Part shown: piece after piece, positions 17,901-49,029 of the stretch | Numbering within the stretch: position 1 is the first letter of the stretch | Layout of the letters: each line of letters starts with the position of its first letter | From: Lepidodermella squamata | Lineage: Eukaryota; Animalia; Gastrotricha | Direction: 5' to 3' | Assembly: GCA_047495785.1 (NCBI GenBank) | Contig: JBLDXI010000024.1 | Location: forward strand, 3,410,001-3,474,000 | DNA length: 64,000 nucleotides | Translations under genes and position numbers: made by a program | The notes under the pieces: model-generated | What the model was told of the DNA's origin: nothing | Seen by the model: only the letters and a program-made list of their open reading frames with translations | Database searches by the model: none

Positions 17901-20900
17901 AAGCCCAGCTGACAATCAAACTTACTACGCATACTACAGAGACTTTTACCTGTCAAATGAAGCCGATGGATATACGTTGATTTTGGAAAATTACGACACA
18001 GCGACTAATGCCTGGGAAGCTGCTGGAAATGGATTTTCCGGCATGTCTTATCAGCCTTTTGCAACTTATGATAAAGGTGTCATGTCTAGTTGCATCACGG
18101 CTAATAATCTGAGCGCTTGGTGGTTCAATAGTGACTGCAAATCAAGTCAAAGCAATCTCAACGGCTTCTACAAAGACACTCGAAATTTAGCCGGTGTCAT
18201 GTGGAAGACTTTGAACGGCGCGAAGGATGGGAAAACGTCTGTCGCTGCGGTGAAAATTGCAATTCGACGAAGAAATCGTCTTCAAGATTGCGCTGCAACA
18301 GGTAACAACGGAACTAGTACCTTATACTTGCCCGATGGGACCAGTTTCCAGGCCGTCTGCGATTTGACGACAAATTACTCTTCTCCCAATATTCAAAATC
18401 GGGGAACAGCTTGGACAATAATTCAGAAGCGAGATGATGGGAAAACTGATTTCTGGCGAGGCTGGAATGACTACAAACAAGGCTTTTCCGATCCTGATAA
18501 AGGTCTCAACGGCGATTACTGGCTTGGTCTTGATATAATAAGCAGGATGACTATGGCTGCTCCGTATTCCCTTCTCGTTCACTGCAAAAGTCCGATAGAT
18601 TCTCAGTGGAAATATGCATACTACGACGACTTCAAAGTTTTCCCCGAGAGTCAGAACTATCGGATTCAGTTGAAAGGATTCGACAATGCTACGATATCGC
18701 CAGCCGGGGATTCGATGGGAGCTTGGATGCATAATTACCAGGAGTTCAACACACCTGATAAAGGAGCATTTAAAGACTGCATGGTACAGAATGATAGAAA
18801 ACGATTTGGTGCATGGTGGTATCCACCTCTGGGTGATGGCGTAATTTGGCCTGATGGACAACCAGCGAGTTGTCGGATTCTGTCGAATTTGAACTCCCCA
18901 AACTGGGACAGTCGAGATATGGGTTACGGCTTGAACTGGATGACTCATACTGGCTTAGACAAGTCATGCTCAGCTACTAGACTAGCTATCAAACAAAAAG
19001 GAAACGATGTCTTATATCGACCCAGGGCTAGCACATCTCTTATGTGCAGCAGCAGAAAGATGACGTACAAGCATACGTGCAACCATGCTTACAGGGCAGT
19101 ATCTGGCGATCCTATCCGGCTAATGCTTCCAGATCGAAGTGGGGTATATACTTCGGAAGATTTGGTGTGCAAGCGTAAGTTTGCGATTCGTTACATCTAA
19201 CTGGCTTTCATTCTGTGGTTTATTTTTAAAGCATACGCCGAGCCACAGGACTGCACTTGGAAGCAATCAAAAGCCAATGGAACGAGCAAATTCATTTCGG
19301 ATACATATAGCGATTTAGTGGCAGCTGATAGCAATGGAAACCCTGTTACTTTCACGGGATATTGCGACATGGAAACATTCGGCGGAGGCTGGACCGTCAT
19401 ACAGCGTAGAATTGATGAAAGCACGACGTTCATGTTGGATTTTCCAAGCTATGAAACCTCATTCGGTGCACCTACGAAGAATTTTTGGCTCGGCAATAAG
19501 TTGATCGAAGGCCTAACAGCCTCCGCGAATTTTGAACTTCTGGTCGAGATTCGTGCCGATAACGAGTATGCTTTCGCTTACTACAAACTCTTCTACACAG
19601 AGAGCGATGCCTACGTATTGACCGTCGACAAATATCAAGACTGCTCTACAGCGGGAGATTCGTTAACATCGTTGAAGGGCAACTTTTTCACGTTCGATCT
19701 GTGCGGTGGTTGGTGGTTCAACACTCCATCTGTCTGCTTAGGCAAGAATAACAACGATCGTACATCGAACTTGAACGCTCCAATTGGGAAACAATCCCCT
19801 GATAACTCTGGAATGTTCTGGTACACCTATAAAAACAGTTTCAGTCCCAATCTCATCTGGTCGTCGATGAAAGTTCGCCGTTCTGGAACGCGAGGCCGCT
19901 ACGTTAAAGCAGCGAATTTTAAATGTGACCAAGGCACGTCCGCAGCAATGACAAAGGCCACTGCAGACCTGTGTCAATCAGCATGTACGAGTTACTCAGG
20001 TTTCACCTGCCGAACCGCTGTTTTCACGCCTAAGGGATCTAATGCTGGGGATTGTGTCGTTCGTAATGCGACTTGCGATCCTGGCAGTGGTAAAGTAGAA
20101 GCGGGTACCGATACGTATTTCCGTATGGACGACTGTGATTACTTTCCTGGGGCTTGCGGACCCCCTCCAACAATGGTGGGAGCCACTCAAGAGATTATAT
20201 CACCATCTTACAACTCAAAGATGATCGTCAACTACACTTGCGTAATGGGATTCTCAAACTCAAAATGGAACGGCGATAACACTAATTTGACTTGCGAACC
20301 ATCAAAAGGCATATGGGTCGGAGACTGGTTAGATTGTCGAACATTGTGTGGCATGTTTCCAGATATGTCTCAATTCAACGTTGATAGACTGCCGCAAATC
20401 GACATTGATGGCGGAACAATGACGCTCTACTATCAATGTAGCAACGATTACACTATGGTTTCAACCGGTTCACCCACCAGACTGTGTGCCCCACCCTATG
20501 GCGAGTGGACCGGAGATAAAATTGTTTGCAAATCAACGCGATGCCAGCTACCACCGGTCGTCGACAATTCTTGGAATAACTACACAATTCCCGACCCTAT
20601 CCCATACGAAAACCAAACCAAGTGGAAGACTACCTGGCTATACGGTTGCAATCGGGGTTATGTCTTCAAAGACCCTGATGGTTACGTCAAGAACAAAACG
20701 ATATATTGCGGCGATCAGCAGGAATGGGAACCGAAAACACCTGGAGCGTGTGTTCAGTTCAACTGTGACAATCCTCCGCAGTTTGACGTGAAAGTCTCCG
20801 GACCTGTGCCTATGACAGCTAACGCGCTCTACGAATTCGGCACCACCTTCACCTACGAATGTTTCAGCGATAAAACGTTAGATCCACTGGATTGGGATAG

Positions 20901-21133
20901 TCAGATAAATATTTCGTGCATCGGTGAGTCGTCAGTGTATTCTTGAATGTTTTACATTAAACTCTGCTTGAATCTACAGCCAATAAAACTTGGGGCGTGC
21001 TAAACTATACCGGATCGCCAAAAACATGGCTACCTTCGATTTGCATAGGTAAGATTAGGATATGGGTGAGTTTACGGCCGTATAATAACGTCATGAGTAA
21101 GATCACCACTGGGGCGGTAGCTTCTCACCTTGA
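5984..21133 (+). CDS. Giant mosaic lectin, constant region, copy 1: 11 EGF, ~10 C-type lectin, 3 FA58C, 5 fibrinogen-related, PAN/apple-like, 4 sushi domains
   Basis: I traced about 44 short GT-AG introns and the frame stayed open from the 24-nt microexon (5984-6007) to exon 20980-21048. Motifs include CQNGGTC EGF repeats, WIGL/WxWxDG C-type lectin motifs, [24 protein letters not shown] fibrinogen motifs and C..C..W..C sushi repeats. The terminal exon 21102-21133 ([10 protein letters not shown]) is tentative. Confidence 0.9.
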
Positions 21134-21153
21134 GTTGCGCTTCTTTATGTTTT

Positions 21154-21225
21154 GGGGAGCTGAGCGGTTGACCTCCTCGTGGTGCTTCCTGGAGTCACCT
21201 TGCGGGGTGATACTAACGAACCGCT
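21154..21225 (+). ncRNA. HDV/CPEB3-like self-cleaving ribozyme (copy 1)
   Basis: P1 GGGGAGC/GCUUCCU with G1-U wobble; P2 AGCGGUUG/C(G)AACCGCU; P3 ACC/GGU; L3 UCCUCGU; P1.1 CC/GG; P4 GUCACCU...GGGUGAU; J4/2 CUAA with the putative catalytic C at 21213. Confidence 0.85.
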
Positions 21226-21369
21226 ACTGTTGTATGGATGTTGTAGGTTTCTATAGTAATACACTTGAACTCAAAGTATTGTTCAACATGCTAGAGAAAT
21301 AGCAGGAATGCTGAGAATATTTTGACGCAACGAAGAGTTTGCTAGTTGAGGCTTTCGCCTGCTTTTATG

Positions 21370-21794
21370 AATAAATCATTTATTTTTCACTGCGGTGCCG
21401 CTTTGTCGGCGTCTCCAAGGCTAGCAGGCAACATTAATGGTCGTAATATAAGCAGCAAACAGCGAAGGCTTTGTTCGCGCAAAAAATTCCGAACGTTGCA
21501 AATACCGATGATGGTTTGACAAAGCTTATTTATTAGCTCGATAATGCGTCAGAACCTTCTGACGTTATTCTCGTCCTTTGGCTCACGTGCGCCTAAATGT
21601 GACCGGAAAATAAATATACAGGTGCGAAACCCGTGATCTACAGATCGAGGTGCGAACGCACCTCTTCCGCTTCGCTTCGTCATAGAATTTGTCACTTCAA
21701 GCCATAAAAGTGAAGGCGCATCTCCTCTAGCTCGGTATTTTAGGTTAAATCACCAGGAAGGGATACAAGAGTTTCTCATCTTGAATTGCGCTCG
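21370..21794 (+). promoter_or_regulatory. Conserved upstream block of cassette C
   Basis: Homologous to 1770-2189 with the same shared motifs. Confidence 0.55.
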
Positions 21795-22270
21795 ATGCTG
21801 CTATCCCAGGCTGCTATCAAAGCCCCGTATGTAATAGGAATCGTCATATTTCCGGCGTTGATCCTTTTGGCGAATTTTCGTCTAATTGGTAAGAATTAAG
21901 ACTCCTAACTTCCAACATATTTTTATTCGACATTGAAATTTAAGCTTCGGATTGCAGTGGTTCCGCGCCCGGAAACGACTGCCCCGGTCGAGACAATAAC
22001 AATTGTTGTAGGAACAGTGGATCATGCATAGACGGCAACTATTGCCGTTGTTTGGCGCCTTATAATTCAATGTATTGTGGGAAAAGTAAGTTAGCAATGC
22101 CCTCTAAAAAGCAGATGAAAAGTTTGATATATTTCCTATTTCATCAGAGGAAGGTGATTTCTGTTCCACCTCCAGAACCGCCGACTATCCTCCGTGCGAG
22201 AACGGCGGGACATGCGAAGATAAACAATGCACTTGCCCAGTTGGAACTACTGGTAGATACTGTGAAATAG
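21795..22270 (+). CDS. Variable N-terminal cassette C (signal peptide + 2 EGF)
   Basis: Exons 21795-21888, 21945-22085 and 22148-22270 are in frame with no stops and end RYCEI-G|gtctgt (phase 1). Confidence 0.82.
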
Positions 22271-22799
22271 GTCTGTTTTTCTTTACAAATTCGATTCTTT
22301 CGAAATACAACCGTTATAAAAGCGTAGCTTCGCAACGGGCTACAGTAACTATGATTTAATAAGAAATTATATGTATACATTTCCATTTCATACTGTCCAT
22401 TTCCATATACACATACCATTCATACCGTGAACCGTGATGTTCTGCTTTCCTACCTAATACCTAAGTTTTCTGTTATCTGTTATGCCTTATGCAATACAAC
22501 GCAAAACAGTTATGTTCTAAACGCAAACAAAACTAAAACAAGCTAAATCGAAGTTGAGCAAAACAAAACTCGGTTCTCGGTTATCAGCAAAGACGTTAAA
22601 ATCAATGTAGAAGGTCAATTATGATTGTTTATTCGCAGAATGTCAATGAATTTTTACGAAATAAAAGTCCGCACTCATTAATAGCAAGAATGAAATGCTA
22701 ACTAGAACCGTTCAGGCTCATTATTAGGCAGCTTATTAGGCAGTTCGTTCGCGATTTGCAAATAGCAGGCGAGTAAAGCATCGCGCTGCAACTTGTCAG

Positions 22800-23960
22800 C
22801 GGATTGCTGCATCGCAATAGGCCGATGCCGAGAAGACGCGTTCGACCTTAGACGAAATAAAAATTTGTGCACATCGAAATAGGCGGGAAATATGCGGATA
22901 ATATCTCATCATAATAGTTACCAAGTGAAAATCGATGGACTGTGCCAGGGCCAGAGGCGCACAAGGTACTGTTCGAGGCTCCGCTAGATTAGCGTACTGT
23001 ATAGTTCCTTCAATAAATGACAAGCCAGCATTAAAGTTGGCCTTGCACGAGGCGATTGGATTTTTGGTCGCTTGTTAAGGCCTTCAGTCGCTTCCGGTTT
23101 GACAGGCTCCAGTCTCGAATGGAATGTCGGTCAGCCGATTTCTGAAGTCAGCTGGAAAGCGTTGATCAAGGCCTTGGCCTTACTATAGGACGAGCAATCA
23201 ATCCTTTGGTTGATCAATACAACGCAGATTGTCACGCACGTAATTGTTGGATGCTGATCGGCGATGACGACGATGCCGCAATGCGCTTCAGCCAGCCCAA
23301 AATCGTAAAATTAAATTAAATTATCGCGTCCAAACATTCTCAGGTCCTAATTCAGAGCCAGGTCGCTGATGAGTGATTGGTGACCATCGAAATTTCGAGT
23401 AGCACAGATCAGCCAATGAGTCGGCCGCAGGTCGGCATCGATGAGGAAGCCGAAGAAAACTGAACTAGAGTCAGCGCGAGTCGTTTCTTCTATCTTGGCA
23501 ACGTAATTCATACTATATTTATCAATTGATAGAATCGCGTGCTGCCAAGCCCCATTGATCCCATTGATGCTATCATATCGACCATCAGAACAACACGTAG
23601 TTGGACTTTGACTCCGCAAAATCTGGCCTAAGATGTTACTTGCACTTCGAGAACTGGCTGCACCAAGTCAGCGCTTCGAAGCGCTGTATAACTCAAGCTG
23701 GTTTGTCTTTGGTAAATTTCTTGGCAGCTTGGCAACGCGTGATGCTGTTAGTGGCCTGACAAGCATTAGACAAGCAGTCTTCCATTGCCAAAACACCAAG
23801 GACGATTGAGGGTTCACCCATTCAAACAACGTGTTGCAAACACGAGGAGCCGATGTCGTCCATTAACCAGTCATCGCCTCGCATTCTAGCACAGCAGCGC
23901 AATCGTGGTCTTTAGCATCTTCTTTCTCGATAGATCAAGTCAGTGTCACCTCGCTGAATC
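22800..23960 (-). mobile_element. Decayed coding remnant, probably transposon-derived; homologous to 27960-28960
   Basis: 22938-23100 aligns with 28231-28400. The minus-strand peptides are similar (KRLKAL..NPI.S..A..N.GL...EGT...YANL.EPR) but carry stops and frameshifts. Confidence 0.35.
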
Positions 23961-24019
23961 TTGGCTTCGACTAGCCGACCGGCTTTCAGGTGTTATTAGT
24001 TGCGTTGTTCAACTGAAGG

Positions 24020-24246
24020 CTCTACAATATATCGTTAGCGATGCGCCAAAACAACCACTTTGATGACTCATTCGATCGTACTTTAAGGAGCCCAACGTAA
24101 TGATGAAGTACGTTCGGCTTTTTGAGCACTGATCATACTGATCGTAATTTGAATTTACGTTTAATGGTCGAACGTACTTTCCTTAAAAAATCTATAAATG
24201 GCACAGTGATTGTTTTGGCGCGTCGCTAACGATATATACGATAGAG
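24020..24246. mobile_element. MITE-like foldback element
   Basis: Terminal inverted repeats ATATATCGTTAGCGATGCGCCAAAACAACCACT and AGTGATTGTTTTGGCGCGTCGCTAACGATATAT, plus an inner inverted repeat AAGTACGTTCG/CGAACGTACTT. Confidence 0.7.
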
Positions 24247-25249
24247 TCATACGATTCGGTAACGACTGAATATACCCATTTTTAATTTTAAGCGCAATAG
24301 GTATATTTTTACCATACGAACCGGTTATTAATATGTGCCTCAGTAGTGAAGATTTCAGCGATTACAGCTTGATTTGGGACGAGTTTTGACAAGGACAACT
24401 ACAACATTAGCGTGAGCATGAGAATTGGCGTGGTCCTGTGTGCGATGTGCTGTGTACTACCCAGCCCCCGGCGTATATGCTCCTCGCTAAAAAAACCCGA
24501 AAAAACCTCAGGGGCCCTTTTGTACGGAAGTACCCAAAACTACCTCCCAGATGGAGGATCTTTTCCCGTACATCGGCATTGTCATGACGACTGCCACAAT
24601 TTCGATGCTAAGCATATGTACTAGTACTATTGTACTTTACGTGACGAGATTATTTTAAAAAGAGTGAAATGAAGAGAAAAGAGGGAATCCGATGATTGCT
24701 GCGTGCTAAAATATTAAGGCTCTGCAAAGGGTGAACAGGCGCTTGTCAGTGACAGTGCGCAGGAGACGCTATTGAGGAGGTACATTGCAGAATTTATCTG
24801 ACAAAGGAAATGGAACTTGAGACTTGAGAGACACGGAGAGTTATGGGGCGGTAGAATGGGTGATCGAATTCAGAATAAACACCGGTGACTTCCAGGGGAA
24901 AGACGAACACTTTCGACGTCCTCACGCAGAGGCAGAACATGTCGAACGGCATTGTCAGCATAGCGGCTTCGTGCGATGGCCAGGACACCACATGCAGCCG
25001 ATTCGATCACTGCATTGCCGAAAATACTAATCGGGCCTTATTCGCAACTTAGCACTATCTGCATCGATACATTTAACGAACGGAATTGCCCCGTTCTTCC
25101 CTCTGTTTCAGACTATTTTTCCAGTCTTTCGTTCGTCACTTTGCCACTATAGGAACTGGGGATCAAAAGAAACATAAGCACAAAAGCATTCGAGAAATTT
25201 CTCAGCGACATCTCGCTCAACATCGCAACATCACGGTTGCCTCTGGCAT

Positions 25250-25681
25250 TGAATGAATAATTCTTGTATGTAAATCATGTAAATGATGGTGTTTAGATCG
25301 AATGCTGACGTGCGCCTTTTCGGCGTCGGCAATGTTGGTGGGCAACGCTGATAGTCGTTAGGCAGCAGGCGACAAAACGTTTTTGCACCCCAATGTTCCT
25401 CACACCAAAACGTACCTACATACAGCGTTTCGAAAGAGCGCAATCCTAATCAAACCAGCTATTCAGATGCTTGCGCGAAAAGTGTGAAGGGTAAATACAT
25501 TTCAAGGTGCGAGTGCGAGATAACTTGATCTATCGATCGAGACATCCTGACGTCATTCATTTGTCCCTGCTTCAGAATATAGTCAACGCCGAGAAAATAC
25601 AGCTGAATCATGAATAAGCAGTCTCTAGCAGAGTAGAAGGAGAAAACTCTTTAATTAAAATACGCCAGCGTATCGCGATTG
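25250..25681 (+). promoter_or_regulatory. Conserved upstream block of cassette D
   Basis: Contains GTCGTTAGGCAGCA, TTTCGAAAG.GCGCAATC.TAAT, TGTGAAGGGTAAATA and TGATCTAT.GATCGAGA, shared with the block upstream of E and partly with that of B. Confidence 0.55.
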
Positions 25682-26133
25682 ATGATGCTATCGCCCTTGA
25701 TCGAAACGCCCGATAAGCGAAGAATGGATATATTCTTCTTCATATTAATTCTTCTGGCAAACTTCCTACGTGGTAGGGCTTTAGATTGTTAACATGCAAG
25801 CATTGTTTTGTAACAAATTTGAAATTCAAGTTTCGCAAGCTGGAATATTCTGTTCCAGTGGAAACGGAAACTGTGGTAATTGCTGCAGGAACGGCGGGAC
25901 CTGCATCAACGGCGAGTATTGCCGATGTGAGGCGCCTTATAATTCAATATATTGTGGAAAAAGTAAGTTAACAACACATTGGCCTCCAAAAAAGTTGATG
26001 AAATGTCCAGCTGACGGTGACCTCTGCTCGACTTCGATACTTGACCAATATCCACCATGCGAAAACGGTGGAACTTGTTCATACCAGAAGTGCACTTGCC
26101 CACCAGGGACAAGCGGCAGATATTGTGAAATAG
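25682..26133 (+). CDS. Variable N-terminal cassette D (signal peptide + 2 EGF)
   Basis: Exons 25682-25772, 25831-25962 and 26011-26133 are in frame and end RYCEI-G|gtatgt (phase 1). Confidence 0.82.
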
Positions 26134-26143
26134 GTATGTTATA

Positions 26144-27374
26144 GGGCGATTCACAAACTCGTGTTTTCCACATGAATGAGGCAAAAGATTTTTTGCAGGC
26201 TCACTTGAATCATGAACGATGAAGGAAACCCTTTCACAAATTATTTTTCATAATTCATGATTCAAATAACTGCTTGGCCAATTTTTTCTTTTTATATGCG
26301 GTCAAAAAAGGAATGCGGCCGCAAGGCACAGAACTCGCCACACTTGGCATGATAGTTCTAGATTTTGGACGTTTATGTCATTATGTCTTTTTTCACTGTT
26401 GACTTGGAAATTTTAATTCTCCTATGATTGAGGCTAAAAAACGATACAGAAATAGTGTTTCTGTATTCCTGTACAATACAGAAACACTTTTATTAAGATG
26501 GACTTTTTATTATCGCATTTTCCTATATAAATGGCGTACAAGATCACTTTTCCCCGCACTTTCTAGCTACGTTTCTCCGAGTTTTTAGCAGATACAGAGG
26601 AGAACTCATGACTGTATTCATCTTCGGTTCCTGCGGAACCTCGATTCATACAGTCATTCGTACAAGAAAAGTGTTTCTGTATTCTGACCCATCCAAGATT
26701 GCTTAAATGTCCTATTGAAAAATCTATTAAAAATTTGATTGTTTAAAAATATAGCATTTTTAAGCAACATTTATGGCCCCAATCTTCGACTAGAACACTA
26801 GAACTTCGACTATAGAACACACTAATTAAAATGAGTAATTAGTCGAAACTGATTTGTTTTTGCTAAAATATTTATCCTTGGGCTTTATACTAGCTATTTT
26901 CGGCTATGATAATATCGGCTATTGCTTTGAATTTCAAATTCAATGTAATGACTAGCCTTCAAATAAGCGGTCACAGTGCGCAATATAATCGGGAAAGTTC
27001 GAAAATTAAATTTGCATGGGACTTTTTCAAATTCTGCAAGTCAAAACAAAAATGGATGATAATGACAGGAACGCCATCAACCACCGAAGCTCGCTAGTTG
27101 CATAGTGGCTTAGCTCTGAACATGCGAAACCAACATCATGGGTTCTGTGCTCAGTGGCGGCTTCGTTCTTTTCGGTCAAAGCAAGTCGCACACAAAAAAA
27201 TCGTTATTTGAAATCATGAATCATGAATTATGACAAATAATTTGTGAAAGGGTTTCGTTCATCGTTCATGATTCAAATGGCTTCTCGGCCGTTTTTGCAA
27301 GAGATGAATTTAGCGCATAAAAAAGGACGATGAATCATGAATGTGTATTTTACACACGAGTTTGTGAACCCCAC
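26144..27374. mobile_element. Non-autonomous DNA transposon / large MITE with long imperfect TIRs
   Basis: The left end (TTCACAAACTCGTGT...TTGAATCATGAACGATGAA.GAAACCCTTTCACAAATTATTT.TCATAATTCATGATTCA) is the reverse complement of 27200-27372. The element is flanked by TA/TTA and has no transposase ORF. Confidence 0.75.
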
Positions 27375-27959
27375 TTATCGATGCTAGGGTAAGGCTACCC
27401 AAATATGCATAAACAAGTATGGCTTTTTCAAACGCTTGCTATTCCTTAACCATGAGGTTCCCACCAATTTCAGCAACTCACTTAATTAGCAAATATTCGG
27501 ACACCGATTTAAGAGGGTAGGAAGCTTAGTGGTGTGTGGGATGTGAGAGCGATGCTTCAAATCCGCAGATTTCCGCTCCTATCCGCGAACGAACGAAGAC
27601 ACCCCACGAGTCGTTCGTTCGCTCCGTCCGTCTGTACGTTCAGACAGGAGGATATGAGCGTACGCTTATAAAACAGGAAACCGTCACTATCAAAGGCCGT
27701 CAGGCCGACACAGCTTAATGTTACATTTCTTTTTCGAAATAATGTTTGATTAAATTTAGGCATTTCCAATCAAAGGGTGACAAATTGCAGCAATTGCAGG
27801 GGAACAAAGGGGTGAAATTTATTAGTTCACCGTTGTTCAAAACCAACATATGTTCGGCGTTGTTTACCACGCCGGTCTGGGTCGCCCTCAGACAGATGAG
27901 CTTACAGGTATCGAGGAAAAAATTTGCGCGTATCTGAAGATCTTTTAGTGGATATTGCG

Positions 27960-28960
27960 CTAGTTATTATAACTTTTGGCTCAGCACCCATCCAGCAGCT
28001 GCCCAGCACAAAGCTGGATGATGCTGGATTGTCTTAAAGCCATGAAATTACGGGATGAGCAAATAGCATTGAATTTTGCTGGACAGTGCTGGAAGCCAGC
28101 ACTTGAACCTACTTCATCCGGCCTCTGATTTAGCACCCTCTGACCCGATCCTGCCATAGTGCTGGATCGAAAGTTACATCTCACGTCAGAACGAGGGACA
28201 TTCTGAGCGGTTTCCAAATGAAACGCGTTAGACCGTGCCAGGGCCAGAGAGGCGAGCTTCAGGCCGAGGCTCCACTAGATTGGCGTAGGTACTGCTAAGG
28301 TTCCTTCTGCAAGTGGCAAGCCGATATTGATGTCGGCGCTAAACGAGACGATTGGATTTTCGACCATTTTATAAGGCCTTCAGCCGCTTCGGGTTGACTG
28401 TAATTTCGTTCAGCAAATTTCTGACATCAGTGGGCCAAGCGTTGGCCATAGTGGGCCATAGGGCTGGCTATGCAGGTCGCCCAGCCGAGGGTCGATGTAG
28501 GGGGCGAGCAGAAGCCTTCCATCTTTTTTTGACCGGCATACCCGACTTTCAAGCCAGTTGCCAGATCAAGGAGCAAGCAAGGAGCAGATCCAACGTGCTG
28601 TAACGTAACGCACCGAGATCTTGCCATCCATTAGCCTTTCAACTCGCTATCGGTGTCTTCAACATCTCTTGCTTAGATAAATTCAGAAAAGTCATTTCGA
28701 ACTGGCCGAACCTCGGCTTCGAGTAGCAGACCAGCTTTGTTGATATTTGTTGTTGTTACGGTCGTCGCTTTGAACAGAACCGGCGCAGGTAGTTCAGCCG
28801 GATGATGTGACGAAAGCAGAGCTGTCATAGATTCGCTCCGCAATATTTTCGGCGGTATGTTAAACTGAAAGGGCACACAGTAGCTCAGTAGATAGCTGCC
28901 TGCTGTGCATTGAGCGTCAAGATCGGGCATGAGTTAGATCCCCACCCGGCCATGCACCTG
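27960..28960 (-). mobile_element. Decayed coding remnant, second copy
   Basis: Homologous to 22800-23960, locally higher GC, interrupted reading frames. Confidence 0.35.
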
Positions 28961-29759
28961 GGTCGATCGTGATTCCTCAAGATACTCCATCGAGTTTTAC
29001 TAAAGTGAAAAGTGGGCAGCGAGAATATCTTGGAAACGAAACCGTTTCAAAACAAACGGTTTTCGGGGTTTTATCCCTCAGTGGGGCCTTGATTTAGAAG
29101 AAAATCTGAAACCTGGCGGTCATCGGGGAACTGTGGCCTCGAGCGTTAGGCAGTGAATGAATTCTAGATCAAACTACATAGTGTACGAAGTGTGGTGTGT
29201 TGTACGGTCTCAAACAACGGCGATATCTTGCTAATGCGTAATTCGTGTTCCGCCGTTATTCCTGCAACCGCAACAGCCTTCCCGTCTGTGTAGCCAGATT
29301 GTGAAACTTAAATTTAAAATATTTTACAAGACGATGTGACTATAGTGTAGCAGTCTAAAGCCGTATAAACTGTGCGGAAATTCGCCAGAATCATCGGGCG
29401 TGATTTTACCAGGATTTTTCAGAATCAATGACTAATACATTTAACTGGAGAGGAATTTTAAGTAAGTATAAGTACTTTTAAATGCAAAATAAATTAATTG
29501 CTAATCACCCAACGGTTGCGGCATGCGGCGGGGTCGCGCAATTCTTTCCTTATACTGAAATATCATTGGGTTTATTGTTTTTTCTAACGATTCTAACGGT
29601 TTTTTCTAAATTCTGCCAAATTTTCCTGATGCGCAGCAACTGCGCTGTTTCTGCATGTTTTCCAGCCCTGGGAGTATGGGAACAATAGCCTTGTAAAAAC
29701 TTTCTCCGCTGCTTTGTTCCGATCAACATCGCAAAAAAGCCTCGTTCCCTTGTTCCTAA

Positions 29760-30184
29760 TCATGAATAAATAATTCTTTGACTTGCAAGTAACTCTGTTT
29801 ACGTCAAATGTTTCGTGTGCGCTTTGTCAGCGTCACCAAGGTCGGCGGACAACACCGATAGTCGTTAAGCAGCAAGCGGCGGGAGGTTTATTCGCACCCG
29901 GATGTTCCGAACAGCAAATAACAGCTGTTTCGAAAGCGCGCAATCATAATAAGACTTATTTTTATTGCACTGACTTTGGTGAAATGTGTGAAGGGTAAAT
30001 AAACTTGGAGGTGACAGCTTTTGATCTATTGATCGAGATATCTCACCTTTAGCAAACTTCATCATTACTTCGTCAAAACTATGTTCGAATTGGGCAGATT
30101 CACGACGCATGACGGTCACATTAAGTGTTTAGTTAGAGTTAGAGTGACATAAGAGAAAAAACTCTGCAGGTAAAATCACGGTCG
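29760..30184 (+). promoter_or_regulatory. Conserved upstream block of cassette E
   Basis: Aligns with 4285-4670 and 25250-25681. Confidence 0.55.
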
Positions 30185-30620
30185 ATGCCTTCGATCAAAT
30201 CGACTAATTGGCTAAGAATGGATATATGTTTTATACTCATTCTTCTGGCGAGCTTCCGCCTAGTTGGTACGGCTTTAGATTGCTAACTTGAATCATTAAA
30301 AGACAATTCGAAATACAAGTTTCACAAAATGGCTGCACCGGAAACGGAAACTGTAATTCTTGCTGTAAGAACGGTGGAACCTGCATTAACAACGATTATT
30401 GCCGTTGTGTCATACCGTACAATACACCACACTGTGGCGATGGTAAGTTGCTACCCAGCGGCTTGACAGGCGCAAAGGTTTAAACAATTTTTGCCAGACA
30501 ATGGTAACCTTTGCGCTACAACGGCGAATAGCGACTATCCGCCTTGCGAAAACGGGGGGACGTGTTCAAACAAGCAATGCTTCTGTCCTATCGGGGTAAC
30601 TGGGAGATACTGTGAAATAG
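30185..30620 (+). CDS. Variable N-terminal cassette E (signal peptide + 2 EGF); proximal 5' end of copy 2
   Basis: Exons 30185-30266, 30320-30442 and 30498-30620 give MPSIKSTNWLRMDICFILILLASFRLVVSQNGC...RYCEI-G. A 214-nt intron leads to microexon 30835-30858. Confidence 0.88.
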
Positions 30621-30834
30621 GTCTGTTTTCAAAATCTTAAATACAATCTTAACACATATTCGAATCGTGAACTGATGTTGTGGGACCACACATCACCCGT
30701 TAGAAGGTTGACCATGGGTTAATAAAATATAACATTATTATTAATATCCACATCTTTTCAAAAACACTTCAATTGTACACTATTACTTTCGTATCTTTTA
30801 ATAACATTCGTTTTTCCATTTAAATTCCCTACAG

Positions 30835-33800
30835 GTACACCGATAACAACACCTGCACGTATGCTTGAATATAAAATAATTTTCGAGCATTTATGAGCTT
30901 TCTTGCAGCGACCTGCACCTTAAATTGCAAAAATGGAGGTACCTGTATAGCGACAGATACTTGCAGATGCACATCGGGATGGACCGGCACAGACTGCAGC
31001 GCTGGTAAGTCTTATCGTAGTGGAAAAAGTTTCGAGCTATTAGTGAAAATTGACAGCTATTTGCTCTTCATCTTGTCAAAATGGCGGAACTTGTTCGGCC
31101 CCGAACACTTGCACATGTGCAAGTGGGTATAATGGCACTCTATGTGGCACACGTAAGCTTCAATTTCATGCGATATTATCATGCGAGTTAATATGTTTTC
31201 TTTGCGGTTCTATATTTATAGCGGTTTGCTCTCCAAGCTGTCAGAACGGTGGAACTTGTTCCTCGCCCAACAATTGCGTTTGCGCCTCTGGGTACAATGG
31301 AACTTCCTGTCAATTGGGTAAACAATTCTACATTTCACAAAAATAGATAATTCATTAAAATAATTTCCCTCAGCTATTTGCTCGCAAGCATGTTTGAATG
31401 GTGGGAGTTGTACTAGGCCAAACGTCTGCACCTGCACTCCAAGTTGGAATGGAACAACGTGTTCAATCCGTAAATCAGCCAGTTCAGTAATTCAACTCTT
31501 GATGTTATCTATATCTCAGCCGTCTGCAATCCATCGTGTCAAAATGGGGGCACCTGTTCGAACCCGAACAGCTGCACTTGCCCGGCTGGTTATACTGGCA
31601 ACAGCTGCCAAAATGGTAGGAGTTTGCTGGCTTAGAACTTAAGTCATCATCAACTAGTTCCTTGAAGCAATTTGCAATCCATCTTGTCAAAATCTTGGCA
31701 CATGCTCCCGTCCCAATGTCTGCACATGCACTTCGCTTTGGAATGACTCGACGTGTTCAACACGTAAGGCTTTGAATCGTTTGGCAACAAGCTAATTAAG
31801 CAAATATTTCACGACTACAGCTGTCTGTAACCCCAGCTGCAATAATGGGGGAAATTGCACAAATGTATCTCCAACTTCCAATAAATGTCGATGTGCAGCA
31901 GGTTGGACTGGGCCCACTTGTTCAACCCGTAGGCTATTGATTAAGGTTAGTAAAGTTAGAAAATCTAGTTTTTTTCCTTTCAAGCAATATGCTCCACTGG
32001 TTGCGCTCACGGTGGCACATGTATCGCGCCAGACCTGTGTAAGTGCAACTATGGATGGAAAGGAGCAAATTGTTCGTTGCCAGCCTGCCCAACTTTAAAT
32101 GAATGCAACGGTCACGGGACATGCATTGCTCTCAACAACTGTACTTGTGACTTCTTATGGAAAGGAGACAGCTGTGACCAATGTTATTTTGACAGATTTT
32201 ATTGCAGTATGGACTGAAAAAATTACGGTCTTTTTCCCAGGGTACTGCCAAGACGGGTGGTGTTACAACGGAGGAAACTGCAGTGGACCTAAGTAACGTT
32301 TATTTTAGTTATGCAGTGTTGCAACTGTTTCAAATTTTACAGCCAGTGCCGCTGCCCACCGATTTGGCGTGGACCCCATTGCGAGCAACGTAAGATAATA
32401 CCATAATAGCAATTCGGAAAATTCTGCTGCATTTCCCATAGCTGTGTGCACTCCTGAATGTTCCAACGGTATCCATTTCATAGCCTCGTGTGATTTTTAT
32501 TAAGAAATATTTAATTAAGGCGGCTGGTGCTTGTGGGCTGGCGGTTTCAAGTAATGCCCTTCAATATTGTGAGAACTTCCATTTTTATCCATCTTTTCTA
32601 GGTGCCATTGTCCTTCAGGATGGACTGGGAACGACTGTACAATCCGTTTGTAACGATTTACGTATGTTTCGGTGGTTAATTTGGGCTCCTTATTTAGCGG
32701 ACCCTGCTTCTTATGCCGGACATCTAACTTTCACGAGTCAGAACGCTAAAACATGGGCTACGGAAGATGTTTACAAAAAATTTGTCCTTGACCCAAGCGC
32801 CTATCCTCAAGGATTTACATCGGCACGTAAGTCAAGTTTCCAGTTTGTTTCCCCTTTTGCCTATTCAATTTTCTCTGGCCTCTTTTGCAGCAACTAGTGT
32901 CGACAATTGCTGCCCCTGTGGATCCTTTTTTCAGGATAACAATTGCTATTTTGTTGTAAATCCTCACACGTCGTGGAATCTGGGAGAATACATGACACAG
33001 CCGCATTACGCAATGGCAACTTGTACCCATGCCGGAGCAACTTTAGCGACATTCGAAACTGGCGATTCACAGGCGAAAATGGCGAATCTAGTCAAATGGT
33101 TAGCAACGGAGCTGAATATTCAATTGGACAAAAAGCCAGTTGATCAGAGTTTGAACGAGTGGAACGATATCTGCTTAATTATTGGAGGATACCGAGATCA
33201 TACTCACAACACATGGTACTGGCAGACTTATCCACCAGTTGAAATCGACGCGAGTTTGTGGTATCGAGGCGAACCGCGTTACGATATTGAATTCTTATGC
33301 ATGATACCGGTAAGGAGGAAATGTCACATTCGAAGTGGAATTTTTGACCATTTCCTATACTAGCACAAGAAAAGACCTCTCTTGAGGACTTTCTATTACT
33401 GGTGGGGTGCTCAGCCGGCTGTCTGCATGATCCGCAATCCGTGTTCAAGCATGCCAGTTTGCAAGCCAGGCGTTGCGAAGAATAAAATCGAGAACATGCG
33501 AATCATGGATCGCTGCTACTCAACTGGAGTATCCACAGGCGGAGATTGGGGTAACGATTACGTAGACCGGCTGAAGGCTGAACAAATCTGTCAGGCAAAG
33601 AATGGATTCTTAGCGACAATCAGACAGCAATTTGAGCCGTACTATTGGTCATGGGCTTTGGACGCCTGGTACAATTCAGAGGACAACACAGTAAACAGCT
33701 TGTGGCGTATTTGGACGTACCAGGGTTGGATTGGCTACAATCATTTGGGCTGTGAGTCTTTCTGTTCTCAGAGTTCTCCCATATAAACGTTGTGCTTTTA

Positions 33801-36800
33801 TTAGCGGACTATTATTGGGATTCTATTAATAAAAACTTGGCAAGCCCCTATCATGTCAACTGGAAACTCGGCAGTGGCCAGGAGCCAAATGACCAGTCGG
33901 CTAGTTACTGCTCGATGATGAAAGCTGATGGGTGGTACGACGAGCTATGTTCAAACAACGCAATAGTAATAATTGCTCACATCGATGACATCTTTCTTTA
34001 ACGCAATATCTCTGTCATGCAGAGCATCGCTTGTGAAGGTGGAGTGGGCGTGGTGACATTACCATCCACTGATAGCGCTTGCGTTCCCCAGTGTCCAATC
34101 ACACGTGAGTTTGCCCTTTATTCGATCCAAGTGATATAGTCCAAGAATTTATTCGAGCAGCGACCTGTCCACAAGGCTACTTCTACTCTTCATGCTACGA
34201 CTCTTGCTACAAAATCGTCAAGTTAGTGAAAGTCTTCATGTTTTACTCACAGGCTCATCACTCCAATTTCTTAGTGACTCCAAAAGCTACCTGGACGCCG
34301 CGGGAGAATGCGTAAGAAACATGAAAGTTTTACTGATGCATACATTTTTCATTTCAATTACAGGCTCTTCAAGGCGCCACTCTTCTAAATACTAATACAA
34401 GTGGTGAATTCTATTACATTACCGGATTGTTGCGCAAAGATAAAGATTGGTTCCTTGGCCTTGGCGATTGGGCTCGTCGTTCTCGAGGCGATCTTTCAAT
34501 TGGCATTAAGTCATACACTGGTGATGCGGATGGGACATGGAGATGGCAAGATGATAGCATCACGGATACGATATCTTATGATACCTTATCTGGTGCCTTT
34601 TCAAAAGCACCATCTCCATATGACTTCTTGATCTGGGAAAAGCAGCCAACGCCAGCTTCAGACGGCATCAGTGCGCCGTATATTAGTTTTTTGAGGTATG
34701 ACCCGAGCGGAAAGAGATGGTACATTCCTGTGAGCAATGCTAACAACTTCAACTACCAAGCCGCTTATGTCTGCGAATACAATGCGGCCTGCTATGTGTG
34801 CCCTCCCGGGTGGTTCAAATTTGGGGTTCATTGCTTCGAGTCAGTGCACAACGATGGTGATGGGGCTTATGCTGATAAGGAAGTTGCCTGCAAGAATCAA
34901 GACTCAAGGGCATGGATTTGGTATCCTAGAAGCCAGATGACGACAATGTTTGTTAGGCTTCTAATTGGTCAGATGAACTCGTTCGGAGTGGGTACAAATG
35001 TGTGGATCGGTCTGGAGAAAAACTCTGACGGAAACTGGGTTTGGTCAGACGGAGTTGCCGCTTCCTCATCCCATTCATTTGACATAACATCCACGGCACT
35101 TACCGCCGCTAATGACGCGTTTTTTGTTACTGGCGTCAACAAATTGAGCAGCATAACTACTGTGACTGGCCAGCCCGAGTCGATGTGGAAACCAGCGGTA
35201 AGCACTTCAGCCTACCGAGCTGTTTGCCAGATGCCAGCTATTTACGGCTGGCAGCCAACTTGTCAATCTGCCTGCCCGGCGAAACGTAACTAGATTTACC
35301 ATCATAAATATGTCAACTTACTACCATGCGCTCTATGTTTAGCGACTTGTCCAAGTGGCTACACTTATTCGGCGTGTTTTGACTCATGCTACAAAGTGTC
35401 TACGTAAGTTCTTCGGACAGCGGGTGCTTAGAGATTTCTTCAACTATTCAGATTACAGGAATGCAGTTCAGTACTTTGATGCTTTAGAAGATTGCGTGAG
35501 TATATCATAAGACGCTAAATGGGCAAGAACTATAGCCAGTTTATTAATTTCCGTAGCTTGCCTCGGGTGCGTCATTGGTGAACTTCAATTCGTTGGATGA
35601 ATATCAGTTCATTATCGGTGGCGGGGTTAGTGGACTAGATACCAGCCAATCTTATTTTATTGGCCTGCAAGACTGGGTTCGACGGGGTCGCCGAATCCTT
35701 TACCCTGCGCCTAAGGCATTTTCCACTTATAACGGCGATCCGGATGGGAAGTGGTACTGGTCAGATGGCACTGGTCCGATTGTTAACACAGACATTGCCG
35801 ATGCTCCTTATTCAGCTTCTCCTAGCCCATGGAGTTACTTGATTTGGCAAAAACGGCCGATTTCCTACTACGATGGTTCTAATAATTTCGTGGCATACCT
35901 GTCCTATAACAAATCGCGATCGCAATGGTACTTACCCGTCGATAACAACCGCTTCAGTACTTCGGCTCGTTACATCTGCGAGGTCAACAACGCTTGCTGG
36001 ATGTGCCCGAGTTGGTGGTATAAGTGGGGCAAGATGTGCTATTTGAATACTAATTGGGGTACTACAAAGATAGACAATGCTAGAAAATGGTGTTTTGGTG
36101 AGAACACCGGTGGTGTCGCAATGATAGCCCCGAAAACTGAGCCTGCATTGATGTGGCTGCGTGTTGCCGGTAATCACAACAATATTTTCGGTTTCGGGGA
36201 CACTTTCGTCGGCCTGTACCTGGCCCCGGGCGCCACCAGTTGGATTTGGGGCGATAACTCGTCCTTGGCAGCCACTGATGCGTTCGAAAGCGCGCCTGCT
36301 GATACGCTTGAAGGCGGTGAAACTAACCTCGTATTTAAGCCAGCCGCAGATACTAATTTAAATAACGCGCTTGACCAGCTTGATACTCAGTGGAAGACTC
36401 GAGATGACAGCCAGATGGGATACGTTCTATGCCAACGAGCCGCTGTTTACGCCAACGGAGCAACGCCTGCACCACCAGCACCGACTGCGGCGCCTGGATC
36501 GCCAACTACCACGCCAGTACCAGAATGTGTTAACGTAAGAATTCCAACCATAATTTGGAAATTTCCTGCAATCTTGATCGCAGGATGGTTGTTGCAGATG
36601 CCCCCTCGTTAGATACTCTGACCCTTCGACTCAAACAGATAACTGCTACTTATTTTCGAATTACACGTGAGTGACTATTGCAATGAATCGAAATAGGAAA
36701 TCGAAATCGAAATAGGGCAACTTGGGCAGATGCAAGTTGGGCATGCACTCAAATGGGAGGCTACCTGGCCGTGCCCGACACCATGTCAGAAATGCAATTC

Positions 36801-39800
36801 CTTCTCAACCATCCGAAAATGGTTATGCCATATTACTGGACAGCTCTGTCTTTGAGTAATGACTTTTAATCAACAAATTGTTGCAAAATGATTTCTTTCT
36901 TATTCAGACTCCTACGGCATTTGGGCTTGGCCCAATTGGCCTGGTGGTGTTACACAAGCGTTGAGCCGTGAGTTTTCCTCAAGTTTCATAACAATTATTG
37001 ATGATGAGCTAAAAGGTTTCGTCACGGGTGACACTGCTTTGAAAACGAGTTCGGACTGCTACGCCGGGCTACTGTCAAGCAACGATAACTTAATCATTCC
37101 ATTCTGCAACAGCTCAAGGACGGTTCAGTTGACGAACGCAACAGTTGGAAACGTCACATCTTTCGATACTACAGCCAAATACCGATTCATCTGCGAGATT
37201 GCTCATTCGCCTTCTAATTGTTTAGGTTTGAGTGTTTTTCCAAATTCGAAATGAATTTATTAGATTTTTCGCAGGATGCAAAGATCCGGATTATTCAGCC
37301 AATTTAACCTCACTCAGCGACGGTTTGCGTATTGCTCCTGACAAATGTGTTTGGCTATTCACCCAGAATGCAGACCGGAATACTAATCTAGACAAATGCA
37401 AGGCGGCAGGCATGAAACCCCTGACTCTCCTTCAACGCTATGAAACGCAAGTTGTTAGCCGAGCAATGACTGAACTGCAGAGGGAAGGATTTTGGCTTGA
37501 CATTGTCCTTCGAAATAAAAGTAGAAATTCTAAAATCTGGTTGTAAGCATGCAAAATTTGTTTCTTCTTGTAGCGGATTACGAATGGGAGGGTGAGCCCA
37601 CAACCTGGGAGACCACTCCATATAACAGAGTCGCTGGGTTGCCATGGACGAATAATTGGTATCAACCCTGTTCGAAGCTGAACAATGACATGTTCATATA
37701 CACTCGGAACTGTCAAGATGGATCTGTTCCCGTCTGCACCGTACCATCTGCAGCAACTTGTGCTGACCTTTGCCCGGAAGGTTTCACATCAGTAGGAGCA
37801 ACTTGCTACAAGCTCATAACGTTAGCTTGAATACTAACATATTTCATTCTAAAACATCGCATTTTCAGGGCTGTAACGGCGAAAAATCCATTTGATGCTC
37901 GAAATTATTGTTATCAAAATCATAATACTTACAATTTGGTCTCCATTACTGATGCGAAAATTTTCACCCAAGTCGTCAGTTTTATTCGCTCTTCGAGCTT
38001 AGTGGCAACGGGCGCGGCGATTTGGATTGGCCTCGATAACAGTTTGCGCATAGGTCGGACACCAAACTCGCTAATGCAGAGCACCCAGATCGGAGATCCA
38101 GACTCCAGTATGCTATCGAACGTAGATCAACGTCTATATTCAATTCGTAATACATTTAGATTGGGATCTCGATAACAATGGGGATTTTACCTTGGCAAAT
38201 AGCTCGGATTTTTGGGCTGGCGGCTTCCCGCAAAACAATCACATTTGGGCTTATCTTGTTTGGGACGACACCACAGTTAGGGTGAAATCTACTGTAAGTA
38301 CGACATCAATTGACGGATATTTCATTTGTGAACGGCCGCAACCCTGTTTGGAGTGTGATCTCGGATGGGTTCGTATTCTTACGTTGCTATCTGTTGAACC
38401 TTCATTTCAAATTGAATAGAGTTTCTTTAATGGCCGGTGTTACAAAAGAGTCGCAGGCGTTGCAGGCGCGAAATTTCGAAGCGCAAGACATCAATGCGAA
38501 TTTATGAACGCTTATCAAGCTTCCATCAATTACCCGCTTGAAGGCGTTCTTCTCAGGCTGATGACTGACCCGACAGTTCGCATTACTGTCGGAATGTATA
38601 TGCTAATGCAGTACAACTATCCGCAATACGAGGACTACTGGGAATGGGAGGATGGAACGCGTCTCAATAGTTCACTATTCAACAATTGGCCGAGTGAGCA
38701 ACCTGATAGATCCAACGTAAATCCTCTTCAGATGCATTCAAATAATGTATACTAACGAATCAATTGTTGACAGGATGTCGAAATAGTCGGAGGCTATAGG
38801 TTGAACGGCGGCTTTGCTTGGAATGATGCAAAATTGGATTATGGCGATTGGGGCCTATGTGAAAAAGCTGCAATGCCTCCGACGATCAAATGCACAAAAG
38901 GTACAAGAAATTTTAAATCCTTCAGTATAAAGAAGCTCCCTTCTATTGCAGTTGGGTCTTCGGCTTCGAAATGTGGAGACAGTGTAGCTACTAACATATT
39001 TGTGAGTTCTAGCGGCTTCTCTGCAAGTTCAACATTCGTAAATGGTACAGTATCGTATCCACCATCGAATCTCGCCCTTGGGAACAATTTCTGGTGTCCA
39101 AGCCTCACTCCAGCAATAACGCCAGCAAACCCTGCTTGGATTAGATTACGATTCACTGACGGGCCGATATTTGTTCGTTCGATTGGTGTGGAGGGCCCTT
39201 CCGTAGGTGTGGGCCGAGTGCTGGCGTACATAGTCAGCTACAAACCACAACTTACGTCGAGGGAACTGCACGTTTTTACGCACAAATCAACGGCATTCTG
39301 GATGAAAAAGGCGCCGATCATTTTCGCCGGCCCTGGTGCGGAAACAGTTCGAAACGCGCAAGAAATTTGCCCAAGAATTCAAGCTGCGGAGCTAACAATA
39401 TGGGTTCTTAGCTATACAGTTATGCCGTTCTTCAAGGCAGATATCAAAGGATGCCTCATGACATCTGGCGGTTTGATCTGTTAACATTCAAGATTATTAT
39501 TTAACCTCGGTTATCTCAGGTACTTCACTGTGCGACTGTTGGAATGAGATTTATGACGGGAGCACTTATTTCCCATATTTGAGCCACACAGTCAGCGCAG
39601 ATTCTGGCGATGCTTCTCAGGCTCAAGGTCTGGCCCAAACCTCTGGCTCGGACAATATTCCCGGCTGGACTCCGACAACCTTCGGAGATGGCCGTAACTG
39701 GTGGAAAATCGAGTTTAGTATTCTCAAAATCGTGAGTGGCCTTGTCATGACTGGCAGCAACGATAACAGCAAAAAGGATCAGTGGATCAAATCTTACTAC

Positions 39801-45800: not shown

Positions 45801-45942
45801 GTGCTAAACTACACCGGGTGGTCAAAGACATGGCTGCCTTCGATTTGCATAGGTAAGACTAGGAAAGGAAAATGTGGCAATGAGGTTAATGGGGTGAGTT
45901 TACGCCTGAGAGCACCACTGGGGCGGTAGCTTCTCACCTTGA
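30835..45942 (+). CDS. Giant mosaic lectin, constant region, copy 2 (same exon structure and domain order as copy 1)
   Basis: Collinear with 5984-21133 at an offset of about 24.8 kb. The long ORFs (786 aa, 542 aa) are intact and most differences in the 3' half are synonymous. The terminal exon 45911-45942 ([10 protein letters not shown]) is tentative. Confidence 0.9.
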
Positions 45943-45962
45943 GTTGCGCTTCCTTTTGTTTT

Positions 45963-48993: not shown

Positions 48994-49029
48994 ATTAAAA
49001 TCTACCCATGACACCAAAAGAAGATTGAA

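Follow-up and report, generated by a model that had tools for sequence, protein, structure and literature searches.

Introduction

Alternative first exons that go back to tandem duplication are common. The vertebrate clustered protocadherins and UGT1A possess variable first exons with separate promoters, and splicing connects their tandem 5' units, all of which carry a conserved promoter element, to common exons. A unit in these genes is one large exon; because this exon has no internal acceptor, the use of one unit per mRNA is enforced.

Cassettes of several exons have been described for the chelicerate sDscam genes. The sDscam 5' cassettes comprise 2 or 4 exons with a promoter each, and sDscam-beta6 has only two cassettes (PMC4835542). 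This system is backed by RT-PCR, RNA-seq and reporter assays (Yue et al. 2016, PMC4835542).

Here we describe a window of 64,000 nucleotides from the gastrotrich Lepidodermella squamata (assembly GCA_047495785.1, contig JBLDXI010000024.1, forward strand positions 3,410,001 to 3,474,000), in which two copies of a giant multi-lectin gene are preceded by cassettes A and B (copy 1) and C, D and E (copy 2). Its closest known counterpart in layout is sDscam, because the sDscam 5' cassettes are likewise multi-exon. Both systems have tandem paralogous multi-exon 5' cassettes, each with a leader and N-terminal extracellular domain(s), which lack a 3' end of their own and are joined, here putatively, to shared constant exons. 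In both, the duplication unit is promoter plus cassette, the promoters being putative here, and gene copies are clustered in tandem. In contrast to the Ig domains and the membrane receptor of sDscam, the gastrotrich locus encodes Cys-rich/EGF modules and a secreted multi-lectin body; sDscam has tens of cassettes, whereas this array has three (in the sister copy one live and one dead) and is thus small, and it belongs to another phylum.

With the clustered protocadherins and UGT1A the locus shares tandem variable 5' units with a conserved promoter-like element and a putative splicing to common exons, and a motif at a fixed upstream distance recalls the conserved sequence element of the protocadherins. 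Unlike theirs, the unit here consists of three small exons with acceptors. Stochastic or single-cell choice, CTCF-type looping and an enhancer are unsupported here. The reading that we prefer, and to which we give as much credence as doubt, takes C, D and E for three alternative 5' modules of copy 2, A for the working module of copy 1 and B for a dead one.

Results

Two intact constant bodies

Both constant bodies start with a 24-nt microexon (Table 1). The microexon of copy 2 reads ag/GTACACCGATAACAACACCTGCAC/gt and is entered and left in phase 1. The copy 2 body then contains 96-nt phase 1-1 EGF exons and CTLD-like regions; further domains are two F5/8 type C, several fibrinogen-C and one Sushi. 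Pfam searches with the constant exons detected Fibrinogen_C (E 9.5e-48, 2.7e-74 and 1.9e-25), F5_F8_type_C (one match above cut-off with E 3.8e-10 and another, with 24.4 bits, under the cut-off of 28.2) and Sushi (E 1.7e-6), and revealed no match for the CTLD-like exons. The gene model of the bodies was based on codon usage and position weight matrices (PWM) and replaced an intron-minimising model, which had read through short in-frame introns; it is approximate at 10707-12010 / 35557-36855 and at 13942-14644 / 38774-39470.

Exon lengths and splice sites are nearly all identical between the two bodies. Their comparison over 3,731 gapless codons showed a dN of 0.028 and a dS of 0.26 (omega 0.11), and both ~4,100-codon bodies are intact and apparently functional. 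A search with the 788-aa fibrinogen exon among 1.84 billion representative proteins revealed neither close kin nor transcript-derived models of the family, the best matches showing 37% identity (long, amphioxus FGL1-like) and 51-52% identity (two short fragments). Metagenome scans with the exon-3 alignment and with an N-terminal body exon likewise detected no relatives. The window contains no Rfam match at gathering level and no tRNA genes, and its spacer ORFs are without Pfam domains.

Table 1. Positions of bodies, cassettes, upstream regions and other elements, counted from the first nucleotide of the window.
Feature	Position	Strand	Remarks
Upstream region of A	1796-2189	+	block 1 ~1800-1860 (ATCGTTAAGCAGC variant), block 2 motif 1996-2013, acceptor-like AG ends 2157
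Cassette A, intact	2190-2657	+	exons 2190-2280, 2336-2473, 2535-2657; sister of C, distal at copy 1
Inverted relic, decayed	3847-3897	-	E-type exon 2; copy 1 side
Upstream block of dead B	4158-4574	+	motifs 4385-4397 and 4483-4500
Cassette B, dead	5533-5766	+	sister of E; leader, exon 2 and exon 3 all damaged
Copy 1 constant body	5984-20946	+	microexon 5984-6007; ~45 exons, ~4,100 codons (approximate model)
Upstream region of C	21385-21794	+	block 1 motif 21440-21456, block 2 motif 21597-21614, acceptor-like AG ends 21756
Cassette C, intact	21795-22270	+	exons 21795-21888, 21945-22085, 22148-22270
Upstream region of D	25310-25681	+	block 1 motif 25354-25366, block 2 motif 25482-25499, acceptor-like AG ends 25668
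Cassette D, intact	25682-26133	+	exons 25682-25772, 25831-25962, 26011-26133
Foldback/MITE-like insertion, high-copy	26143-27375	.	starts 10 nt past the end of D exon 3
Inverted relic, decayed	29189-29390	-	E-type exon 1/2 region; copy 2 side
Upstream region of E	29817-30184	+	block 1 motif 29861-29873, block 2 motif 29986-30003, acceptor-like AG ends 30169
Cassette E, intact	30185-30620	+	exons 30185-30266, 30320-30442, 30498-30620; proximal to copy 2 body
Copy 2 constant body	30835-45750	+	microexon 30835-30858, phase 1-1

Anatomy of the intact cassettes

An earlier note on this DNA had placed three intact three-exon cassettes upstream of copy 2, and the coordinates it gave for C, D and E proved exact. 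All junctions of the intact cassettes A, C, D and E are GT..AG and phase 1, and the order of modules is the same in each: a hydrophobic leader exon with the ATG, a Cys-rich exon 2 and an EGF exon 3. The ATG and signal peptide claimed for each cassette were found in C, D and E as a start codon and a hydrophobic core, and the leader cores reach a Kyte-Doolittle mean of 2.9-3.1 over 11 residues. The two EGF-like domains that the note assigned to each cassette were recovered in part. Exon 3 of A, C, D and E matches Pfam EGF (PF00008) with 22.0-26.8 bits at a curated cut-off of 21.5, whereas exon 2 is Cys-rich and EGF-like but contains no domain recognised by Pfam (best E 0.45). All 14-15 cysteines are retained in the intact cassettes.

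The cassette exons of C, D and E are free of in-frame stops, and each of the three ends with ...GRYCEI + G/gt. The described absence of a terminal exon, with an end at RYCEI-G/gt in phase 1 that fits the copy 2 microexon, thus holds. Reading on past the last donor soon leads to a stop (after CEIGML in D and after CEIGLFSKS in E). The similarity between A and C ends 6 nt 3' of the last donor, which fits an exon-intron boundary and not a coding tail. The foldback/MITE-like insertion adjoining D left its last donor, GTATGT, intact.

In the DNA run X1, error-free unitigs with an even depth of 64-71 extend across D, E and the microexon, and the array is therefore not an assembly artefact. A search of sequencing runs with 25600-31500 returned a single run, which was DNA with even unitig depth and no joints.

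Selection on the cassettes

A dN/dS comparison among the cassettes, which had been suggested as a check, revealed purifying selection on every intact one. Pairwise omega values of A, C, D and E range from 0.09 to 0.26, at a dS of 0.64 for A and C and of >1 or saturation for the other pairs. Under a neutral simulation of substitutions only, run to half the observed divergence, 1-4% of copies retain start, frame and splice sites and <0.1% retain all cysteines. Copies of the same age that were not retained, namely B and the inverted relics, have decayed. As evolutionary evidence, this selection and the apparent reliance of copy 1 on A speak for use of the cassettes and against decay.

Cassette death thus has precedents at this locus, and C and D might be old duplicates that were silenced recently, with E (in copy 1, A) as the only one in use. 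However, both combine an omega of 0.1-0.26 at (near-)saturated dS with intact signals throughout, and their silencing would need to be very recent; we consider this highly improbable.

Upstream blocks as putative promoters

The conserved block that had been reported ahead of each cassette was confirmed, with motif matches far above chance expectation. The 18-nt block 2 motif GTGTGANNNGNAAATAMA, allowing <=1 mismatch, has 5 matches compared with 0.04 expected in 64 kb, and these are found only upstream of the five cassettes; for GTCGT(0-4)TARGCAGC, 4 matches compare with 0.02 expected. In all four intact cassettes the 18-nt motif lies 194-200 nt 5' of the ATG. Block 2 carries a TATA-like core ~197 nt before the ATG, and block 1 lies 100-160 nt farther 5'. 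The upstream blocks of C, D and E (~450 nt) contain GTGTGA..AAATAAA and GTCGTTAAGCAGC. Upstream regions of A-type and E-type can still be aligned (E 8.7e-8) despite their saturated coding dS. Folding of block 1 gave no convincing conserved RNA structure (-9.3 kcal/mol, 2 compensatory pairs), and we therefore read it as a DNA element. Each upstream block may represent the promoter of its cassette.

The AATAAA in block 2 was considered as the poly(A) signal of an upstream transcript and rejected, as A has the motif without a preceding same-strand gene. A scan for bacterial-type promoters was discounted, the host being a eukaryote.

An acceptor-like AG precedes the ATG of every cassette, at -32 (A), -38 (C), -13 (D), -15 (E) and -11 (B), and these sites score 4.2-8.3 by PWM. 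Lying 13-38 nt 5' of each intact ATG and scoring within the range of real acceptors, these sites would suit one long transcript that begins upstream of C and in which spliced-leader trans-splicing before the ATG of C, D or E selects the cassette. The conserved TATA-like blocks argue against such a selector, since their fixed distance to every ATG, kept even between the saturated A-type and E-type, is promoter-like for each cassette. We regard trans-splicing as the sole selector as distinctly unlikely; promoter choice and trans-splice choice can coexist.

Probable dependence of copy 1 on its distal cassette

Copy 1 repeats the layout of copy 2, with the intact distal cassette A followed by the dead proximal cassette B. 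In B, neither the hydrophobic core nor the donor of the leader survives, a frameshift and a stop disrupt exon 2, and most of exon 3, with RYCEIG/gt, has been deleted. An insertion of ~835-850 nt now separates the upstream block of B from its exon 1. A scan of 2658-5983 for another ATG with hydrophobic leader and phase-1 donor found none; the same scan recovers A, C, D and E.

With B dead and no further leader exon detected in the interval, body 1 would start only at A, over a 3.3-kb intron. Body 1 is thus very probably fed by the distal cassette A, the sole candidate leader for this constrained body, which makes it very probable that a distal cassette can feed a body. The joining of A to body 1 must pass the remnant acceptor of B. 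This argument applies directly to C, the sister of A, and not to D.

Splice signals and joining to the microexon

Serial inclusion of C, D and E in one mRNA is as legal as their exclusive use, since every exon of a cassette is phase 1-1 and both exon 2 and exon 3 carry an acceptor. Exon 3 of C could be joined in frame to exon 2 of D, and exon 3 of D to exon 2 of E, both of which have AG acceptors, and the three putative promoters would then yield a nested series of proteins, with 6, 4 or 2 Cys-rich modules at the N-terminus. Cross-cassette products with extra domains are known from sDscam-beta (PMC4835542). The acceptors of exon 2 are weak, though, with scores of 2.3 in D and 0.0 in E compared with 6.7 for the microexon and 6.4 +/- 2.6 for the constant introns, which favours predicted skipping of both exons. 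Transcripts started at A must in addition skip the remnant acceptor of B exon 2, since B contains a stop and lacks a last donor, and body 1 is still strongly constrained. Serial inclusion appears unlikely on balance.

For exclusive use, in turn, the joining would require introns of 8.6 kb from C and 4.7 kb from D, whereas the other introns of the gene measure ~42-75 nt. A, C and E share the last donor GTCTGT, which occurs once among 89 constant introns and scores 3.8-4.1 by PWM compared with a mean of 6.4. Such very long introns and atypical donors, together with the short tails and early stops on read-through, count in favour of another reading, in which C and D are small genes in their own right that encode secreted peptides of two Cys-rich modules and end by read-through (in D, ...CEIGML), with E alone feeding body 2. 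Yet A, the sister of C, must start body 1; the phase-1 end at G/GT is invariant in 4/4 cassettes, while the tails beyond it are unrelated and similarity breaks off just past the donor; the ribozyme-like 3' element of the lectin genes has no second copy after C or D; and the foldback element directly follows exon 3 of D. We find stand-alone genes rather improbable.

Mutually exclusive splicing of the Dscam1 type requires base pairing between docking and selector sequences, one in the intron behind each variable unit and one ahead of the constant exon. RNAduplex comparison with 200 dinucleotide shuffles revealed no such pairing for C, D, E and A (z -0.84 to +0.57).

Discussion

The layout put forward in the earlier note, tandem paralogous 5' modules with a start, leader and block each, without an end of their own and phase-compatible with one body, is real. 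From it we infer that A is joined to body 1 and that C and D are joined to body 2, with a single module in each mRNA. Besides a putative proximal control region of its own, each module has a signal-peptide exon, two Cys-rich exons and, 5' of the ATG, an unpaired acceptor. Either transcription or leader addition would begin at one module, the last donor of the chosen module (RYCEI-G/gt, phase 1) would be spliced to the 24-nt microexon at the start of the common body, and modules 3' of the chosen one would leave with the long intron. The products would be secreted proteins of ~4,100 residues with different leaders, different first and second modules and different regulation. The intact start modules thus probably give alternative N-termini or expression patterns.

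If C, D and E do serve as alternative starts, the few genes that diversify their 5' end through tandem duplication of promoter plus cassette would be joined by one from a new phylum and from a third class of protein unrelated to the others, a secreted EGF/lectin/fibrinogen mosaic. The two sister copies, one with a dead proximal cassette, would provide a natural experiment on the way in which a distal donor bypasses the exons of downstream cassettes amid ~55-nt introns.

More speculatively, and with little confidence, the giant multi-lectin family of Lepidodermella squamata may use small arrays of exchangeable modules of promoter, leader and Cys-rich exons, with a promoter or a spliced-leader trans-splice site as selector, so that pattern-recognition-type proteins would vary in N-terminus and in expression domain. 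This would be an independent lectin counterpart of the sDscam and protocadherin layout, in a phylum from which no such system is known.

Tandem gene copies and their start modules

Self-comparison of the window revealed a very large gene, encoding a giant secreted multi-lectin, in two tandem copies (copy 1, 5767-21228, versus copy 2, 30629-46037; 89-90% identity over 15.5 kb). The repeats before each copy are shorter and much more diverged than the bodies (1722-2663 versus 21320-22276, 73%; 4158-4574 versus 29620-30082, 67%; 25693-26140 versus 30187-30627, 67%). The sequence is eukaryotic, and its introns measure about 42-75 nt. From the reading frames, five start modules, or cassettes, were delimited, each with an upstream block, a leader exon and two cysteine-rich exons, ahead of the 24-nt microexon that opens the constant region.

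Start modules, microexons and further reading frames of the window
Feature	Position	State or reading	Coordinates
A	distal, before copy 1	intact	exons 2190-2280 / 2336-2473 / 2535-2657
B	proximal, before copy 1	dead	remnants 5533-5766
C	before copy 2	intact	exons 21795-21888 / 21945-22085 / 22148-22270
D	before copy 2	intact	exons 25682-25772 / 25831-25962 / 26011-26133
E	proximal, before copy 2	intact	exons 30185-30266 / 30320-30442 / 30498-30620
Microexon	copy 1		5984-6007
Microexon	copy 2	phase 1-1	30835-30858
ORF (-)		reads like trypsin-type serine protease (translation reading only)	114-875
ORF (-)		reads like Twinkle-type mitochondrial helicase (translation reading only)	46507-49038
ORF (+)		reads like SURF1 (translation reading only)	51522-52468

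The three modules that an earlier note had placed before copy 2 were recovered in detail. As proposed there, C, D and E each have their own ATG and hydrophobic leader (Kyte-Doolittle 2.9-3.1; examples are FPALILLANF, IFFFILILLANF and ICFILILLASF), and all end in GRYCEI with a G directly before gt, in phase 1, fitting the microexon; every intron is GT..AG and every junction phase 1. Of the two EGF-like domains suggested per module, that of exon 3 lies above the Pfam cut-off, whereas exon 2 is cysteine-rich without a Pfam match. D, E and the microexon are matched without difference by unitigs of DNA run X1 at even depth (64-71), so the cassette array is real DNA.

Segments of the C-D and D-E spacers (22917-23099 and 28210-28395), which lie about equally far from the cassette that follows, share 73% identity; this suggests that D and E stem from a unit of spacer plus cassette, about 4.5-5.3 kb long, that was duplicated in tandem. 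The stretch 28870-28950 is tRNA-like on reading and may be a SINE; its depth is raised (270 versus about 68), and ARAGORN found no tRNA in it.

Constraint on the gene bodies

In a splice-aware model built on codon-usage log-odds and splice PWMs, each body comprises some 45-48 exons and around 4,100 codons; 41 of the 45 copy-1 exons map to copy 2 with equal length and equal splice dinucleotides. Domain searches used exons singly, and joined exons served only for translation, alignment and dN/dS. Besides the microexon linker, the bodies contain 96-nt phase 1-1 EGF exons in a row, CTLD-like regions that Pfam does not match, two F5/8 type C domains, a Sushi domain and fibrinogen-C domains spread over three exons. 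Neither close relatives nor transcript-derived proteins of the gene were found in the protein libraries searched or in metagenomes.

Comparison of body 1 with body 2 over 3,731 gapless codons showed dN 0.028, dS 0.26, omega 0.11 and no stop; for a drifting copy 1, omega near 0.5 and many indels would be expected. Because of this low omega and the lack of stops, both bodies are judged functional. Their dS is mosaic, 0.09-0.34 over most of the gene and about 1.9 (dN 0.13) in 13329-14644 versus 38160-39470. Divergence is far higher in the cassettes and the DNA flanking them than in the body, and it changes sharply directly behind exon 3 of B/E. An old duplication of one unit comprising A/C type, B/E type and body, with most of the body later subject to gene conversion, fits this pattern, and the dS mosaic points to homogenisation that spared the 13329-14644 / 38160-39470 segment. 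The two-cassette layout would then be older than the gene duplication.

Selection on the cassettes

The dN/dS comparison called for in the earlier note gave pairwise omega of 0.09-0.26, with dS of 0.64 for A-C, 1.2-1.7 for D-E and saturation in the remaining pairs. Neutral simulation with substitutions only, run to half of the observed divergence, left start, frame and splice sites intact in 1-4% of copies and all cysteines in <0.1%. In B the leader core and the exon-1 donor are missing, exon 2 is frameshifted with a stop, and exon 3 is mostly gone, last donor included; this cassette can be taken as an internal control for the look of unselected copies of that age. Two inverted E-type fragments (3847-3897, 29189-29390) are likewise decayed. 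Low omega, the simulation and these decayed controls show that selection maintains the intact cassettes. It is very unlikely that C and D are silent, unused leftovers.

Relative to E, about 835-850 nt of extra DNA lie in 4575-5480, between the upstream block and exon 1 of B; they were probably inserted, either as a factor in the death of B or after it.

Predicted cassette use and splicing

Scanning 2658-5983 for an ATG with hydrophobic leader and phase-1 donor, by a procedure that does recover A, C, D and E, gave no further candidate. Since body 1 is strongly constrained and has to begin with a leader, and since B is dead and the scan gave no other leader, A very probably feeds body 1. For this, A would have to splice from 2657 over 3.3 kb to 5984, bypassing the surviving exon-2 acceptor of B. 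Indirectly, yet fairly strongly, this indicates that the body can be served by a distal cassette while a cassette downstream of it is skipped. By homology the argument would extend to its sister C, and not directly to D. That C and D are instead small genes for stand-alone peptides seems improbable.

With every cassette exon in phase 1-1 and an acceptor before each exon 2 and exon 3, inclusion of C, D and E in series in one mRNA would be legal. However, the exon-2 acceptors of D and E are weak (2.3 and 0.0 versus 6.7 for the microexon), which together with the forced skipping of B argues mildly for exclusive use; we regard serial inclusion as unlikely. To reach the microexon, C and D need introns of 8.6 kb and 4.7 kb, very long for this gene. 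The rare GTCTGT is the last donor of A, C and E, and no docking/selector pairing was found at the cassettes.

A foldback/MITE-like element (26143-27375) begins 10 nt past the last D exon and leaves the D donor untouched. Its terminal inverted repeats (22 nt) match at 86% and its inner arms (63 nt) at 95%; it is high-copy, with unitig depth up to about 4,900 versus 64-71 in the flanks.

Upstream blocks

Alignment of the five cassette upstream regions revealed two conserved blocks, in line with the block per module described earlier. The window contains GTGTGANNNGNAAATAMA five times, always ahead of a cassette (0.04 expected), at 194 (A), 198 (C), 200 (D) and 199 nt (E) from the ATG and 1,050 nt in dead B. 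GTCGT..TARGCAGC occurs four times (0.02 expected), and A carries a one-mismatch version. Because the blocks are conserved across cassette types with saturated synonymous sites, they are constrained; we read them as a predicted TATA-like core promoter and upstream element. They gave no sign of an RNA fold and no Rfam family. In addition, an acceptor-like AG that scores like a real acceptor stands 13-38 nt ahead of the ATG in each cassette. We regard choice of the cassette by trans-splice site as quite unlikely.

A weak HDV-ribozyme match (21152-21225; Rfam RF00094, 24.7 bits, E 0.33, below the gathering score of 50) lies about 200 nt past the copy 1 stop and about 160 nt short of the conserved region that precedes C; such an element would separate copy 1 read-through from C.

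Relation to known 5'-cassette genes

The proposal of alternative promoters and N-terminal cassettes feeding one constant region is partly supported: it held for the tandem intact modules, the phase fit and selection, and A is inferred to feed body 1. For copy 2, the chances seem about even that C, and probably D, provide body 2 with alternative 5' modules, each under a control region of its own.

Clustered protocadherins and UGT1A have single large first exons; the principle is common to the cassette locus, the exon structure differs. In the closest known system, chelicerate sDscam, each tandem 5' cassette comprises 2 or 4 exons behind its own promoter and supplies leader and N-terminal domains that are joined to constant exons; one sDscam gene has two cassettes only, and cross-cassette products occur too (PMC4835542). 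The locus has the structure of the tandem 5'-cassette class, to which it probably adds a new protein class and a new phylum.
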